From: Octopus bimaculoides
Taxonomy: Eukaryota
Direction: 5' to 3'
DNA: 55,432 bases
Assembly: GCF_001194135.2 (NCBI RefSeq)
Contig: NC_068982.1
Location: 48,525,519-48,580,950, forward strand
The position numbers were made by a program, and so were the translations under genes. The notes under the pieces are model-generated. The model ran no database searches. It was not told the DNA's origin and saw only the letters and a program-made list of their open reading frames with translations. Shown here piece by piece: positions 10,094-54,546 of the stretch. Numbering within the stretch: the stretch's first letter is position 1; each line of letters starts with the position of its first letter.

Positions 10094-10135
<42 letters not shown>

Positions 10136-10535
10136 NNNNNNNNNNNNNNNNNNNNNNNNNNNNNNNNNNNNNNNNNNNNNNNNNNNNNNNNNNNNNNNNN
10201 NNNNNNNNNNNNNNNNNNNNNNNNNNNNNNNNNNNNNNNNNNNNNNNNNNNNNNNNNNNNNNNNNNNNNNNNNNNNNNNNNNNNNNNNNNNNNNNNNNNN
10301 NNNNNNNNNNNNNNNNNNNNNNNNNNNNNNNNNNNNNNNNNNNNNNNNNNNNNNNNNNNNNNNNNNNNNNNNNNNNNNNNNNNNNNNNNNNNNNNNNNNN
10401 NNNNNNNNNNNNNNNNNNNNNNNNNNNNNNNNNNNNNNNNNNNNNNNNNNNNNNNNNNNNNNNNNNNNNNNNNNNNNNNNNNNNNNNNNNNNNNNNNNNN
10501 NNNNNNNNNNNNNNNNNNNNNNNNNNNNNNNNNNN
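10136..10535. other. Assembly gap (400 N) after an (AT)n tract
   Basis: N run. Confidence 0.99.
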
Positions 10536-10799
10536 TTTTTGACAAGGAAATAATAATTTTATCACCGCCAGAATCGTTTGTTTACGTAGTCAGCACTTAC
10601 TGTATTCGACTGAATGGACGTCAGTCATTGGTTGAAATTACAGAAATACGACAACTTTAACATGAAATAACTTGCGATGTACGTTTTTTTGTTAAGAAGA
10701 CTAAGAGAAAAAGATGTTTTATATGACACATTCTACCAGTGTCCCAAGTTTCAAAGTGTTTCGTTAAGAAAATACTGGTGCCCCCGTTTTGAACTAGAT

Positions 10800-15600: not shown

Positions 15601-15971
15601 TGGAGGCACAATGGCCCAGTGGTTAGGGCAGTGGACTCGTGGTCATAGGATCGTGGTTTCGATTCCCAGACCAGGCATTGTGAGTGTTTATTGAGCGAAG
15701 ACACTTAAAAGCTCCACGAGGCTCCGGCAGGGGATGGTGGCAAACCCTGCTGTACTCTTTCACCACAACTTTCTCTCAATTTTACTTCCTGTTTCTGTTG
15801 TGCCTTTAATTCAAAGGGTCAGCCTTGTCATGCTGAATATCTCCGAGAACTACGTTAAGGGTACACATGTCTGTGGAGTGCTCAGCCACTTGCATGTTAA
15901 TTTCATGAGCAGGCTGTTCCGTTGATCAGATCAACTGGAACCCTCGACGTCGTAAGTGATGGAGTGCCAAC
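15601..15971 (+). mobile_element. Full-length tRNA-derived SINE
   Basis: A box TGGCCCAGTGG, B box GGTTTCGATTCCC; 12-bp TSD ATATTAAAACAG (15589-15600 and 15972-15983); second copy at 27450. Confidence 0.92.
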
Positions 15972-21222: not shown

Positions 21223-21570
21223 GCACAGTCTATGACAGACCATGTCTGTCTTTGGCTGGCCTCAAATCTCACCTGCGAACCCATGGAAAACAAACTTCAA
21301 CCAGCTATTCTGATTATATGTCTGTGCTCACGTTTGAATGTGGTGTGTGCCAGCGGGTTTGCAAATCCAATGGGGGTCTTAAAAGACATGGTAGGATCCA
21401 CAATGAGCAGAACATACCTGCAGGTATTGGTAGTACAAATCAGAAGTGCAATCTGTGTGGGTGTTTTTTCAAAACATTGTCTGGTTTAAAAAGCCACATC
21501 AGACGCCATGAAAGGGCTAAGGTGTAGGTGCAGGAGGTGGTCAAACTCTGTGTAAGGAGTAGACAACGAC
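21222..21570 (+). mobile_element. 5'-truncated retroposed fragment encoding three C2H2 zinc fingers (probably the C-terminus of an RTE-type LINE ORF)
   Basis: CTVYDRPCLSLAGLKSHLRTH..CGVCQRVCKSNGGLKRHGRIH..CNLCGCFFKTLSGLKSHIRRH* then a short UTR and (AT)n; no TGEKP linkers; embedded in a microsatellite. Confidence 0.65.
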
Positions 21571-23987: not shown

Positions 23988-24305
23988 GTGAAGGCACATA
24001 GCATAGTGGTTAGAGCATCAGACTCACAATCAATAGGTAGTGAGTTCAATTCATGAACCAGGTTGTGTGTTATGTTCTTGAAATAAGACACTTTATTTTA
24101 CATTGCTCCAGTTTATTCAGCTGTAGAAATGTGTGGTGGCATCACTGGTTCTAAGCTGTATTGGCCTTTGCCTTGCCCTTGGGTAACATCAGTAGCATAA
24201 AGAGGGAAGGATGGTATGTATGGGTGACTGCTGCTCTTCCATAAACAATCTTGCACAGACTTGTGCCTCAGAGGAGTACTTTCTAGGTGCAATCCCATGG
24301 TCATT
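23988..24305 (+). mobile_element. tRNA-derived SINE family A
   Basis: GTGAAGGCACATAGCATAGTGG A box, GAGTTCAATTC B box; collinear with 33637 and 52424. Confidence 0.88.
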
Positions 24306-35720: not shown

Positions 35721-35889
35721 CTAGTGCTGGGATGCAGCAGATAATAGTCGCTGGTAGCAATGGTACCAAAGATAGTTTGTAATAGTATTTATGTTGTGGA
35801 AGTAATGGTATTGATTTAGGTAGAGGTAAATATAAAAAAAAATCATTATAGTCATAATTATTATTATCATCATTATTATTATTATTATT

Positions 35890-36103
35890 ATGAGGTAGTG
35901 CGCTGGCAGAATCATTAGCATGCTGGACAAAAGGCTAAGCAGCATTTTGTCTGTCTTTATGTCCTGTGTTCAAATTCTGACAAAGTTGACTTTACCTTTC
36001 GTCCGTTCAGGATTGATAAAATTAAGCATCAGTGAAACATTGAGTCGATGTAATCAACTAGTCCCCTTCCTTGTAGAAAGGATTATTATTATAGTAGAAA
36101 GGA

Positions 36104-36168
<65 letters not shown>

Positions 36169-36600
36169 GAGGTGGTGAGCTGACAGAATCATTAGCACAC
36201 CGGGCAAAATGGGTATCGACATTTTGCCTGTCCTTACATTCTGTGTTCAAATTCTGACAAAGTCAACTTTGCCTTTCGTTATTTCAGGGTTGATAAAATA
36301 AGTACCAGTTGAGTATTGGGGTCGATGTGATCGACTTATGCCTTTCCCCAAGATTGCTGGCTTTGTGCCAAAATTTGAAACCCTTATTATGAGGCAGTGA
36401 ACTGGCAGACACATTAGTGCGCTGGATATATTGCTTAGCAGCATTTTCTCTACTTTTTATGTTCTGAGTTCAAATCACTGAGATTGACATTGCATTTCCT
36501 CCTTTTGAGGCTGATAAAATAATTACCATTTGAACACTGGGGTCAATTTAATTGAGTAGCCCTTTACTCAAAATTGCAGGCCTCATGCCAATGATAGAAA
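35890..36600 (+). mobile_element. Three tandem SINE family D copies separated by (TTA)n
   Basis: GAGG.GG.GAGCTGGCAGA..CATTAGCA heads at about 35892, 36170 and 36390. Confidence 0.8.
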
Positions 36601-40500: not shown

Positions 40501-40804
40501 TCATCATCATTATCATCGTTTAACGTCCGCTTTCCACGCTAGCATGGGTTGGACGATTTGACTGACAACTGATGAAACCAGATGGCTACACCAAGCTCCA
40601 ATCTGATTTGGCAGAGTTTCTACAGCTGGATGCCCTTCCTAACACCAACCACTCCGAGAGTGTAGTGGGTGCTTTTACGTGCCACCGGTATGAAGGCCAG
40701 TCAGACGGTACTGGCAACGGCGACGCTCAAAATGGTGTAATTTACGTGCCACCCGCACAAGAGCCAGTCCAACGGCACTGGCAATGATCTCGCTCGAAAG
40801 TCCT
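40501..40804 (-). mobile_element. RTE-type 3' tail running into a gap
   Basis: Near-identical to 13081-13400. Confidence 0.85.
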
Positions 40805-41648
40805 NNNNNNNNNNNNNNNNNNNNNNNNNNNNNNNNNNNNNNNNNNNNNNNNNNNNNNNNNNNNNNNNNNNNNNNNNNNNNNNNNNNNNNNNNNNNNNNN
40901 NNNNNNNNNNNNNNNNNNNNNNNNNNNNNNNNNNNNNNNNNNNNNNNNNNNNNNNNNNNNNNNNNNNNNNNNNNNNNNNNNNNNNNNNNNNNNNNNNNNN
41001 NNNNNNNNNNNNNNNNNNNNNNNNNNNNNNNNNNNNNNNNNNNNNNNNNNNNNNNNNNNNNNNNNNNNNNNNNNNNNNNNNNNNNNNNNNNNNNNNNNNN
41101 NNNNNNNNNNNNNNNNNNNNNNNNNNNNNNNNNNNNNNNNNNNNNNNNNNNNNNNNNNNNNNNNNNNNNNNNNNNNNNNNNNNNNNNNNNNNNNNNNNNN
41201 NNNNNNNNNNNNNNNNNNNNNNNNNNNNNNNNNNNNNNNNNNNNNNNNNNNNNNNNNNNNNNNNNNNNNNNNNNNNNNNNNNNNNNNNNNNNNNNNNNNN
41301 NNNNNNNNNNNNNNNNNNNNNNNNNNNNNNNNNNNNNNNNNNNNNNNNNNNNNNNNNNNNNNNNNNNNNNNNNNNNNNNNNNNNNNNNNNNNNNNNNNNN
41401 NNNNNNNNNNNNNNNNNNNNNNNNNNNNNNNNNNNNNNNNNNNNNNNNNNNNNNNNNNNNNNNNNNNNNNNNNNNNNNNNNNNNNNNNNNNNNNNNNNNN
41501 NNNNNNNNNNNNNNNNNNNNNNNNNNNNNNNNNNNNNNNNNNNNNNNNNNNNNNNNNNNNNNNNNNNNNNNNNNNNNNNNNNNNNNNNNNNNNNNNNNNN
41601 NNNNNNNNNNNNNNNNNNNNNNNNNNNNNNNNNNNNNNNNNNNNNNNN
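40805..41648. other. Assembly gap (844 N)
   Basis: N run. Confidence 0.99.
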
Positions 41649-41797
41649 GTTCACGTCCCCGTAACTTAGCAGTTCGGCAAAAGAGACCGATAGAATAAGT
41701 ACTAGGCTTACCAATAATAAGTCGTGGGGTCGATTTGCTCGACTACAAGTGGTGTTCCAGCATGGCCACAGTCAAATGACTGAAACAAGTAAAAGAG
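41649..41797 (+). mobile_element. SINE family B 3' part (young)
   Basis: Close reverse complement of about 42620-42765. Confidence 0.85.
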
Positions 41798-42619: not shown

Positions 42620-43003
42620 TTACTTACTTGTTTCAGTCATTTGACTGTGGCCATGCTGGAGCACTGCCTGTAGTCGAGCAAATCGACCCCAGGACTTATT
42701 CTTTGTAAGCCTAGTACTTATTCTATCGGTCTCTTTTGCCGAACCGCTAAGTGACGGGGACGTAAACACACCAGCATCGGTTGTCAAGCAATGCTAGGGG
42801 GGACAAACACAGACACACAAACACACACACACACATATATACATATATACGACAGGCTTCTTTCAGTTTCCATTTACCAAATCCACTCACAAGGCTTTGG
42901 TCGGCCCGAGGCTATAGTAGAAGACACTTGCCCAAGGTGCCACGCAGTGGGACTGAACCCAGAACCATGTGGTTGGTAAGCAAGCTACTTACCACACAGC
43001 CAC
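42620..43003 (-). mobile_element. SINE family B, young full-length copy
   Basis: tRNA-like head TGGCTGTGTGGTAAG..GGGTTCAGTCCCACTGCG, CpGs retained, tail TGAAACAAGTAAGTAAA. Confidence 0.92.
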
Positions 43004-43296
43004 TCTCTGCTCACAAAAACTTCACAACTAAAATCTTAAACTATTTTCTTTTTCATTTTAAAATATTTTCCAGTTTACCTTTTGTATGCAACCAATACAG
43101 AAACAATACAGAGTGCAGCAAAAACAAACAAGACCCCCCCACCCACAGCTCTGCAAAAAACTCAGATTCACCATTCTTGATATATATTTCAACAGCAGAT
43201 GCACAGTGTGCACATCTCCAAACATTGATTGTAACTACACAGAAACAATAAACCTGCATGAAGACACTGTTATCACCAGCCCTACTTTACTTATCC

Positions 43297-52760: not shown

Positions 52761-53756
52761 ACCATTTACCCTATCTATTGATGTAGGGTTTCTTCAAATA
52801 CAGATTTATTCAAAAAAAAAAAAAAGATGATGCTAGTAATACATTATGCACTCTAGTTGCTTACATGCATACATGTAGTACAAGTTTGAATATGTGGATG
52901 TATTCAAGCATTTTGAGATTTTATTATACCTTTCATAGTTTTACGACATTACACTGAGTTATAATTGAGCTAGTTTTAAAGTTTGCTTTTATTACTCTAT
53001 CAAAATAATAACTACTAATTGCATTATTACATTTGATTAGAGTTAATGGCAAAACAGAAACTCTATAAAGTATAAAAATGCATACTTTAATATTACATCC
53101 ATTTTTTAATAAAAATATTTCCAAATAAAACAACATTTTTTATTTTGTTATAAGATACACAAAACACAAGTTTCCATCGTTTTTGTAATGTGTCTAATAA
53201 TACTGAGCATAGTATGAAGAGGATATTACATACTTGTTGATTGGGAATATTACTATACTAGTAGAAATCCACGCAGTGGGCAGAATTTCTGAAACTAACA
53301 ATGCTTCAAATTTTAGCACAAGGCCAGCAAGTTCTGGGGGAAGCAGGTAAGTCGGTTACATCAGTCCCAGTACTTCTGCTGGTATTTTTTTTATTGACAC
53401 TGAAAGGATGAATGGCAAGGTCAACCTCAGCAGAATAAATTCTTAGAAGGTAAGGTTGGATGAAATACCACTAAGCATTCTGCCAAATGTGCTAACAATT
53501 CTGCCAGCTCACTGTTCTATTTCTGCAACTAATAATCATTTCAAATTTTGGCACAAGGCCAACAATTTCGTTGATTGCATCGACCCCAGTGCTCAACTAG
53601 TACTCATTCTATCGACCCTAAAAGGGTGAAAGGCAAAGTTGACCTTGGCAGAATTGGAACTTAGAATGTTTGTTTACATATGATGTAATTTATATTACAT
53701 CTAGCATTTCTGGATGACTTTATAAGTTCTAAAATTACAGAAGAATTTGTCAGTAA

Positions 53757-53828
53757 AGCAGTTTAGCTTAGTGGTAGAACACTTGACTGGAAATCAAAGG
53801 GACGTGAATTCGATTCTCATAGCTGGTT
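53757..53828 (+). tRNA. tRNA-Cys-like pseudo-tRNA, anticodon GGA (copy 1)
   Basis: TAGCTTAGTGGTAGAAC D arm, TTGA-CTGGAAA-TCAA anticodon arm, TTCGATT T loop, T at position 73; body resembles eukaryotic tRNA-Cys (TAGCTCAGTGGTAGAGCATTTGACTGCAGATCAA). Confidence 0.6.
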
Positions 53829-54038
53829 GCTGACAAATTTTTCTGCTTTGTAAGGATTTTATCCTATACATGCTATTCTATCAGTATTTATGCATTGAAA
53901 AATATATCTTTCTACTTGTACTACAAGACATGTCAGTGCTTCAAAAACAAACTTAAGTTGCTTACATATGATGTAATTTATATTACATCTAGCGTTTGAT
54001 TTTATGAGTTCTAAAATTGCAGAAGAATTTGTCAGTAA

Positions 54039-54110
54039 AGCAGTTTAGCTTAGTGGTAGAGCACTTGACTGGAAATCAAAGGGGTGTGAATTCGATTCTC
54101 ATAGCTAGTT
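54039..54110 (+). tRNA. tRNA-Cys-like pseudo-tRNA, anticodon GGA (copy 2)
   Basis: As copy 1, with an intact D stem GCTT/GAGC but a weaker acceptor stem. Confidence 0.6.
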
Positions 54111-54546
54111 GCTGACAGATTTTTCTGCTCTGTAACGATTTTATCCTATATATGCTGTTCTATCAGTATTTACACATTGAAAAATATATCTTTCTACTTG
54201 TATTAGAATGTAAAGACAAACAAAATGCCATTACCCAGCATGTTAAGAATTCTGCCAGCATGCTGCCTTATTTATGCAACTAATAATGATAATCTACTAC
54301 AAACACAAGTCCTGAAATTTTGCAAGAGGGAGGCTAGTCATTTACATTGATACCAGGTACTTATTTTATTGGTACTTATTTTATTGACCTTAAAACAATG
54401 AAAGGTAAAATCAACCTCAGCAGAATTTGAACTTAGGTCATAAAGCTGGAAGAAATGCCACAAAGCACATTGTCCAATGTGTTAACAATTCTGCTTGCTC
54501 ACCGCCTTAATAATGATACCAATTTTTAATAATAACTACCCAATAG

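Follow-up and report, generated by a model that had tools for sequence, protein, structure and literature searches.

A 533-bp insertion with two hairpin-mounted tRNA-like units in an octopus SINE, possibly a partial tandem of Penelope-like style

Small-RNA genes are known to ride mobile DNA in two ways: as the tRNA at the 5' end of short interspersed nuclear elements (SINEs), and inside the true long terminal repeats (LTRs) of TRIMs (terminal-repeat retrotransposons in miniature), as the tRNA of Helenus or the 5S of Cassandra. The subject of this analysis is a 533-bp block with two tRNA-like units that lies within a SINE of Octopus bimaculoides (NCBI RefSeq assembly GCF_001194135.2, contig NC_068982.1). 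The window analysed was a stretch of 55,432 nucleotides (positions 48,525,519 to 48,580,950, forward strand), and positions below are counted from its first letter. A reading made earlier from the letters of the window (the sequence-only reading) had described an unclassified unit, moved whole, with two hairpin-mounted pseudo-tRNAs. This description is supported here, and the block, which fits no family tested, is unclassified.

Insertions of Penelope-like elements (PLEs) and of their non-autonomous relatives are typically partial tandems with pseudo-LTRs, often with a tail of 30-40 bp at one end, and the non-autonomous relatives have been mistaken for LTR elements (PMC8557442, PMC8969392). 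For one PLE, biochemical work supports a multi-copy template RNA, a nick made in AT-rich DNA and reverse transcription with an internal start in a stem-loop, the tail being what lies between two such start sites (PMC11167929). Naiad-type PLEs, which are common in invertebrates, have no hammerhead (PMC8557442). Octopus vulgaris is rich in PLEs and in several clades of long interspersed nuclear elements (LINEs) (PMC13282606). TRIMs whose LTRs carry small-RNA genes have been described as Cassandra (5S), Helenus (tRNA) and Ajax (5S). Helenus is defined by LTRs, a primer-binding site (PBS), a polypurine tract (PPT) and a target-site duplication (TSD) of 4 bp (animals) or 5 bp (fungi, plants); in molluscs it is reported for bivalves only, with none reported in cephalopods (PMC10886601). 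In metazoan non-LTR retrozymes, units of 150-450 bp and low G+C are arranged in tandem; the arrays extend from dimers up to large multimers, have no PBS or PPT, and lie between TSDs longer than 4 bp (PMC7229834).

The block is flanked by two exact copies of the 9-mer TTAGAATGT (Table 1). The empty site was rebuilt by taking out the block and one 9-mer, and was then aligned with 10 other copies of the host SINE from the window. The alignment was gap-free across the junction. The duplicated 9-mer is itself SINE sequence, the family consensus at that place being TCAGAATGT. This identifies the block as an insertion and the 9-mer as a genuine TSD, and bears out the earlier claim of a unit that split a SINE and moved as a whole. 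The host SINE, which we take to be an abundant octopus SINE (a literature search with its sequence gave no match), is ~13% diverged from the local SINE consensus and is therefore older than the insertion. Three host SINEs in the same orientation lie head to tail at 53300-54530, with the insertion in the middle one. A SINE pair at 35857-36353 resembles this trio, with (ATT)22 between its members (Tandem Repeats Finder, period 277, 79% matches). The AT-rich tail of the host SINE seems to attract further SINE insertions.

Tandem Repeats Finder returned 53670-54202 as a tandem with a period of 282, 1.9 copies and 91% matches. Alignment of the copies with each other gave direct repeats of 251 and 245 bp around a single 37-bp segment, or 1.85 copies of the unit, as had been claimed. 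The copies are 93.5% identical, with 16 substitutions in 245 aligned bases (15 transitions, 1 transversion) and one 6-bp indel, and the Jukes-Cantor distance between them is 0.068. At seven sites copy 1 has A and copy 2 has G; this excess may have arisen by chance or through A-to-I editing of a structured template RNA. Several of the differences are CpG decay, for example TG versus CA at 53891-53892. The repeats begin TTGTTT and TTGCTT and finish CTTGTA, and shifting the boundary by one base destroys the TSD. In the predicted fold the start of the 37-bp segment is contained in a small hairpin, CTTGT-ACT-ACAAG (53915-53927). A simple tandem duplication in situ was ruled out by the 288-bp period, which exceeds the 245-bp second copy, and by the single 37-bp segment; for the same reasons the block arrived as a 1.85-mer, that is, in a repeat-internal-repeat layout. 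Since the rebuilt SINE is also gap-free, the objection that the sequence-only reading had raised against itself, a local duplication with a coincidental TSD, falls away.

The two tRNA-like units were the only above-threshold matches to any RNA family in the entire window (Rfam; gathering score of the tRNA family, 29). At default settings ARAGORN called no tRNA in them; with lowered thresholds it called both as tRNA-Ser(gga) with a 5-nt variable region, in agreement with the earlier claim of a Ser anticodon without a long variable arm. Of the cloverleaves that had been described with the GGA anticodon, the recognition by Rfam and by relaxed ARAGORN stands, but the structures are imperfect and degenerate. 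In both, a G.G mismatch interrupts the acceptor stem, the anticodon stem is 4 bp long, and A53.C61 is mismatched where the T loop begins at its base; the D stem is also broken in copy 1, and an acceptor pair in copy 2. With a GGA anticodon and no long Ser variable arm, neither unit has the intact cloverleaf of one isotype that marks a functional tRNA gene. A hybrid given the pair-preserving base at the two stem sites that differ between the copies passed the default threshold of ARAGORN; the cloverleaf of the common ancestor was therefore better, and both copies have since decayed. The Cys-like body of the sequence-only reading was retained for the D and anticodon arms only, which resemble what we take to be a eukaryotic tRNA-Cys-GCA; this is a lead and not a test. 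The A box, TAGCTTAGTGG, is a perfect fit to the textbook consensus TRGCNNAGTGG, and the B box, AATTCGATTCT, is weakened relative to the consensus GGTTCGANTCC. The tRNA-like unit begins 87 nt inside the block, in the middle of the repeat and not at the 5' end as in a SINE, which had also been stated correctly.

An inverted-repeat search recovered the 19-bp stem that had been described around unit 1, and gave a stem of 20 bp around unit 2. As + strand RNA, 19/19 positions of hairpin 1 pair, two of them as G.U, and weaker pairing in the predicted fold lengthens the stem to ~53712-53866. In both stems together the non-Watson-Crick positions of the + strand RNA are all G.U (3/3) and none A.C, which weakly favours pairing on the tRNA-sense strand. 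Folding is better for the + strand unit than for its dinucleotide shuffles (z = -3.05 linear, -2.5 as a circle), and the - strand unit is less clearly structured (z = -1.66 linear, -2.1 as a circle). Between the copies the stem region differs by three single transitions, of which one gives a G.U pair, one adds a G-C pair and one breaks the acceptor pair; no compensatory change was found in the stems in this comparison of two sequences.

A run of T5, of the type of RNA polymerase III (Pol III) terminators, lies 10 nt past each tRNA-like unit, in copy 1 within the 3' stem arm, and a T4 run lies 29 nt past the unit. Since the + strand contains these T5 and T4 runs and the - strand contains A5 runs, no Pol III transcript of the whole unit would be made in either direction. 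Because the block in addition starts upstream of the tRNA, Pol III transcription from the tRNA module cannot yield the mobilised RNA. Judged by its sequence, each module would be a self-contained pseudo-tRNA gene of Pol III type, not the promoter of the mobilised RNA. The predicted Pol III product would be a pseudo-tRNA of ~90-100 nt with paired leader and trailer, ending at T5.

Table 1. Features of the inserted block and its insertion site (positions in the window).
Feature	Position	Strand	Basis or remark
Host SINE copy interrupted by the block	53541..54300	+	Middle of three head-to-tail SINEs (53300-54530)
Left TSD, TTAGAATGT, host SINE sequence	53661..53669	.	Repeat search; matches SINE consensus TCAGAATGT
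Whole inserted block, 533 bp	53670..54202	+	31% G+C; 1.85 copies of a 282-288-bp unit
Repeat copy 1, 251 bp	53670..53920	+	Copy-to-copy alignment
Small 8-bp hairpin near unit start, GATGTAAT-TTAT-ATTACATC	53682..53701, twin 53970-53989	+	
Hairpin 1 around tRNA-like unit 1, 19-bp stem	53738..53845	+	Arms 53738-53756 / 53827-53845
tRNA-like unit 1, anticodon GGA, degenerate	53757..53828	+	Rfam tRNA, 41.6 bits
A box of unit 1	53764-53774	+	
B-box-like motif of unit 1	53806-53818	+	
T5 run, Pol III terminator type, past unit 1	53838..53842	+	10 nt past unit, in 3' stem arm
Unique 37-bp segment ('spacer' or 'tail'), CTACAAGACATGTCAGTGCTTCAAAAACAAACTTAAG	53921..53957	+	Alignment
Repeat copy 2, 245 bp	53958..54202	+	Alignment; 6-bp deletion relative to copy 1
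Hairpin 2 around tRNA-like unit 2, 20-bp stem	54019..54128	+	Arms 54019-54038 / 54109-54128
tRNA-like unit 2, anticodon GGA, degenerate	54039..54110	+	Rfam tRNA, 45.4 bits
A box of unit 2	54046-54056	+	
B-box-like motif of unit 2	54088-54100	+	
T5 twin past unit 2	54120-54124	+	10 nt past unit
Right TSD, TTAGAATGT	54203..54211	.	Repeat search; comparison with SINE consensus TCAGAATGT

Further copies were searched for within the window using blastn (word size 7) and an nhmmer profile, which returned only the two copies and two unrelated tRNA-SINE heads. Metagenome contigs were scanned for exact matches to a 22-mer from the junction of stem and tRNA (0 matches) and to a 22-mer from the anticodon arm (2 matches: L001, 1648-1669, and L002, 7097-7118). 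The latter two come from the same unrelated eukaryote-like locus with nothing tRNA-like around them and were rejected as chance matches. Scans of genome and viral contig collections yielded 0 matches, and so did a search of 5.8 billion proteins with the element's six-frame translation as a chimeric query (E <= 10). The collections searched contain essentially no cephalopod DNA, so the copy-number negatives carry little weight.

The preferred explanation, given a probability of about 0.4, is that the block is an old and decayed retrotransposed partial tandem in the pseudo-LTR style of PLEs, the variant of a truncated LINE or PLE end included. This route was not part of the sequence-only reading. 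For it we infer an RNA intermediate, a PLE-like enzyme, an orientation of the element and a role for the tRNA module. Target-primed reverse transcription would copy an RNA of several units, read from a tandem source locus, into an AT-rich target that had been nicked. It would run through one unit into the next, leaving a partial tandem whose repeated part mimics an LTR. The 37-bp segment would then be a 30-40-bp tail between alternative reverse-transcription start sites, and a staggered cut in the target would give the 9-bp duplication. The tRNA-Cys-derived module on its leader-trailer stem would not serve as the promoter of the mobilised RNA. The block may be a short non-autonomous element or, equally, the end of a longer, 5'-truncated LINE or PLE that carries a tandem repeat in its terminal region. 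As the PLE route explains both the layout and the TSD, neither LTR rules nor circles are needed.

PLE pseudo-LTR insertions, including the non-autonomous MRC1 of Chlamydomonas, are, as the block may be, partial head-to-tail tandems that mimic LTRs (PMC8557442, PMC8969392, PMC11167929). They share with it an AT-rich target, a TSD that is not of integrase length, and the lack of a PBS or clear PPT, and their extra segment of 30-40 bp may correspond to the 37-bp segment; Naiad and Chlamys elements, like the block, are without a hammerhead. The target of the present insertion is AT-rich. If the ends were random within the 288-bp period, a unique segment of 30-40 bp would be expected in ~4% of cases, and its length here is 37 bp. 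The loop of the small predicted hairpin CTTGT-ACT-ACAAG contains the 3' end of the block.

Several points weigh against the PLE route. Only one copy is at hand, and the defining marks of target-primed insertion are a TSD that varies in length, truncation at the 5' end and a 3' end that stays fixed. A 1.85-mer fits a full copy with a 5'-truncated copy read either way round; the same layout is that of an LTR-internal-LTR element and fits other models as well. The argument from the tail comes from a single length. No hammerhead was found in the element, though most canonical PLE pseudo-LTRs and all retrozymes have one. The window holds no reverse transcriptase, PLE or LINE with a matching end. 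The block further differs from PLEs in that the window has no open reading frame (ORF) for a reverse transcriptase or GIY-YIG domain and the block has shown no similarity to an autonomous PLE in the collections searched, and from PLE pseudo-LTRs in its tRNA-like module, which is not described for them.

The alternative that survives best, though improbable, is that no family of transposable elements is involved and that repair of a staggered double-strand break took up, on one occasion, a piece of a tandem array (a tRNA-pseudogene satellite, perhaps in the form of extrachromosomal circular DNA). With its leader, body and terminator, each unit resembles a small Pol III gene in complete form, such as those of tandem tRNA gene arrays, and the end points are arbitrary within the period. 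That only one copy was found in any search also favours it, but this absence weighs little in view of the collections searched. A clean 9-bp duplication without filler or deletion is more typical of staggered cuts made by an enzyme.

Next in rank, and unlikely as well, is a Helenus-like TRIM (TRIMp3), in which two LTRs of ~250 bp with tRNA-derived Pol III promoters would enclose a 37-bp internal region and be mobilised by a Gypsy-type reverse transcriptase and integrase. Two direct repeats (251 and 245 bp), both containing an Rfam tRNA match, are the exact layout of Helenus, which occurs in molluscs, and their 93.5% identity is consistent with an LTR pair identical at insertion. As in Helenus and Cassandra, the tRNA is unlikely to be functional, its anticodon and body disagreeing (PMC10886601). 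The last 15 nt of the internal segment, AAAAACAAACTTAAG, are 73% purine, an interrupted and weak tract. The ends of the repeats, however, are TT..TA instead of TG..CA, and the segment after the 5' repeat starts CTACAAGACATGTCAGTGC, without a TGG-type PBS or complementarity to tRNA; inside the element, the 37-bp segment is complementary only to itself, through a palindrome of 8 bp. The TSD comprises exactly 9 bp, entirely of host SINE sequence, compared with 4-6 bp for integrases and 4-5 bp for Helenus and Cassandra. A reading with a 4-bp TSD was rejected, as it requires two substitutions at the end of the second repeat that by chance recreate the bases of the host SINE. Pol III would stop at T5 right after the tRNA, a terminator placement that likewise sets the block apart from these TRIMs. 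The 11-mer probes of the element were not found in the published Helenus consensus file; no sequence is shared with those consensuses, and the family is unreported in cephalopods. Sequence derived from 5S rRNA, by which Cassandra is recognised, was searched for in Rfam and gave no match (E <= 10). The proposal of a Cassandra-like TRIM with internal Pol III promoters, one of two offered in the sequence-only reading, falls short in the repeat ends, the missing PBS and the TSD length, and its idea that an internal Pol III promoter drives the element is removed by the terminator and the position of the tRNA.

A non-autonomous cut-and-paste DNA transposon of the Mutator or Merlin type is quite unlikely. 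Its appeal is the TSD, which at exactly 9 bp falls within the range of 8-10 bp, 9-bp duplications being characteristic of these superfamilies; both have families annotated in Octopus vulgaris (PMC13282606). Such an element should carry terminal inverted repeats (TIRs), and none were found: alignment of the first 80 bp with the reverse complement of the last 80 bp scored 16.0, and shuffled sequences averaged 16.1. What inverted repeats there are lie internally and surround the tRNA-like units, and a body of direct repeats is unusual for a miniature inverted-repeat transposable element (MITE).

A retrozyme-like unit, the other proposal of the sequence-only reading, is very doubtful. A unit RNA of ~288 nt would be freed from tandem transcripts by RNase P and RNase Z at the tRNA-like structure, may be circularised, and would be reverse-transcribed as a multimer. 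The part of this proposal that stood is the layout: an AT-rich unit of 282-288 bp with 31% G+C, an approximate dimer of 1.85 copies, no PBS or clear PPT, and a TSD of 9 bp, which exceeds 4 bp (PMC7229834). A multimeric or circular template would be expected to give an insertion longer than the unit. The + strand unit has significant predicted structure in linear as well as circular form (z-scores as above), and all non-Watson-Crick positions of the stems are G.U on the tRNA-sense strand. No match to any ribozyme class of Rfam came up at E <= 10, and neither strand has a CUGANGA core, even when one mismatch to CUGAUGA is allowed. Only one copy is available, and comparison of its two repeats gave no compensatory change. 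Products of RNase P and RNase Z have 5'-phosphate and 3'-hydroxyl ends and are not substrates of the RtcB ligase that circularises retrozymes. By its predicted fold, the block shares with metazoan non-LTR retrozymes a highly self-paired unit RNA, and it shares the lack of LTRs (PMC7229834; bioRxiv 10.64898/2026.07.22.740005), and differs from them in having no type I hammerhead, the structured core being filled by the tRNA-like structure on its stem.

The least probable of the proposals weighed joins the two ideas: a cephalopod family of retrozyme-like tandems mobilised by PLEs, in which the tRNA-like structure on its leader-trailer stem would replace the hammerhead and release would be by RNase P and RNase Z. 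In such a family the Pol III boxes of the module might additionally give a hairpin-tRNA RNA of ~100 nt.

The remaining candidates were rejected: a tRNA-derived SINE because the tRNA lies 87 nt inside rather than at the 5' end and is followed by T5 after 10 nt, other TIR transposons because there are no TIRs, Helitron, DIRS and Crypton because such elements make no TSD, and a nested MITE made by the 19-bp arms because no duplication flanks the arms in either copy. The second objection foreseen by the sequence-only reading, that the block is a known SINE or a MITE of a Mutator-like element (MULE), likewise fails, since the position of the tRNA and the missing TIRs fit neither. tRNA-SINEs and the block are alike in being short non-coding repeats with a tRNA-derived module of A box and B box, a TSD and no poly(A). 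They differ in that the tRNA of the block is internal, before T5 and inside a 19-bp stem, and that the block was inserted as 1.85 copies. Canonical tRNA-SINEs are present in the window at 15607-15673 and 23988-24065 (+), where the tRNA part gave weak nhmmer matches (E = 0.0037 and 0.00027, respectively). In both the tRNA is of a different type, lies 5' of an ordinary-looking SINE body and has no flanking stem.

The block is best seen as a new variant among non-autonomous retroelements that bear small-RNA genes, inserted in pseudo-LTR style. If a family of such elements exists, it would be a third way for small-RNA-gene modules to ride mobile DNA, inside a partial-tandem non-LTR unit. It would also call for care in the annotation of cephalopod genomes: the units exceed the Rfam tRNA threshold and would inflate tRNA counts, and the pseudo-LTR layout would be liable to misfiling as an LTR element. 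As it stands, this is one old and decayed insertion with no sign of function at the locus, where a function is unlikely.

Other features of the window were noted in passing. TA/CA simple repeats account for the many below-threshold Rfam 'miRNA' matches elsewhere in the window. Assembly gaps are marked by runs of N (1293 in total, at ~10100-10540, 40790-41690 and 46240), and the window is therefore from a draft assembly. Exact look-ups of four window ORFs and of the protein P0001 gave no records. P0001 (462 aa) is the one metaclust protein, LINE reverse transcriptase-like and without a contig, that was returned by a chimeric query of repeat-derived window ORFs. Part of the repeat-derived ORF at 42781-43251 (+) is 50% identical to a stretch of P0001. 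Outside the shared piece P0001 looks like a decayed LINE reverse transcriptase, and the piece common to both is probably a repeat nested in that LINE. At 21252-21527 (+) lies a 91-aa ORF with C2H2 zinc-finger motifs (Pfam zf-C2H2, E = 1.8e-10) and stop codons around it, a zinc-finger gene fragment or else a portion of some decayed element.

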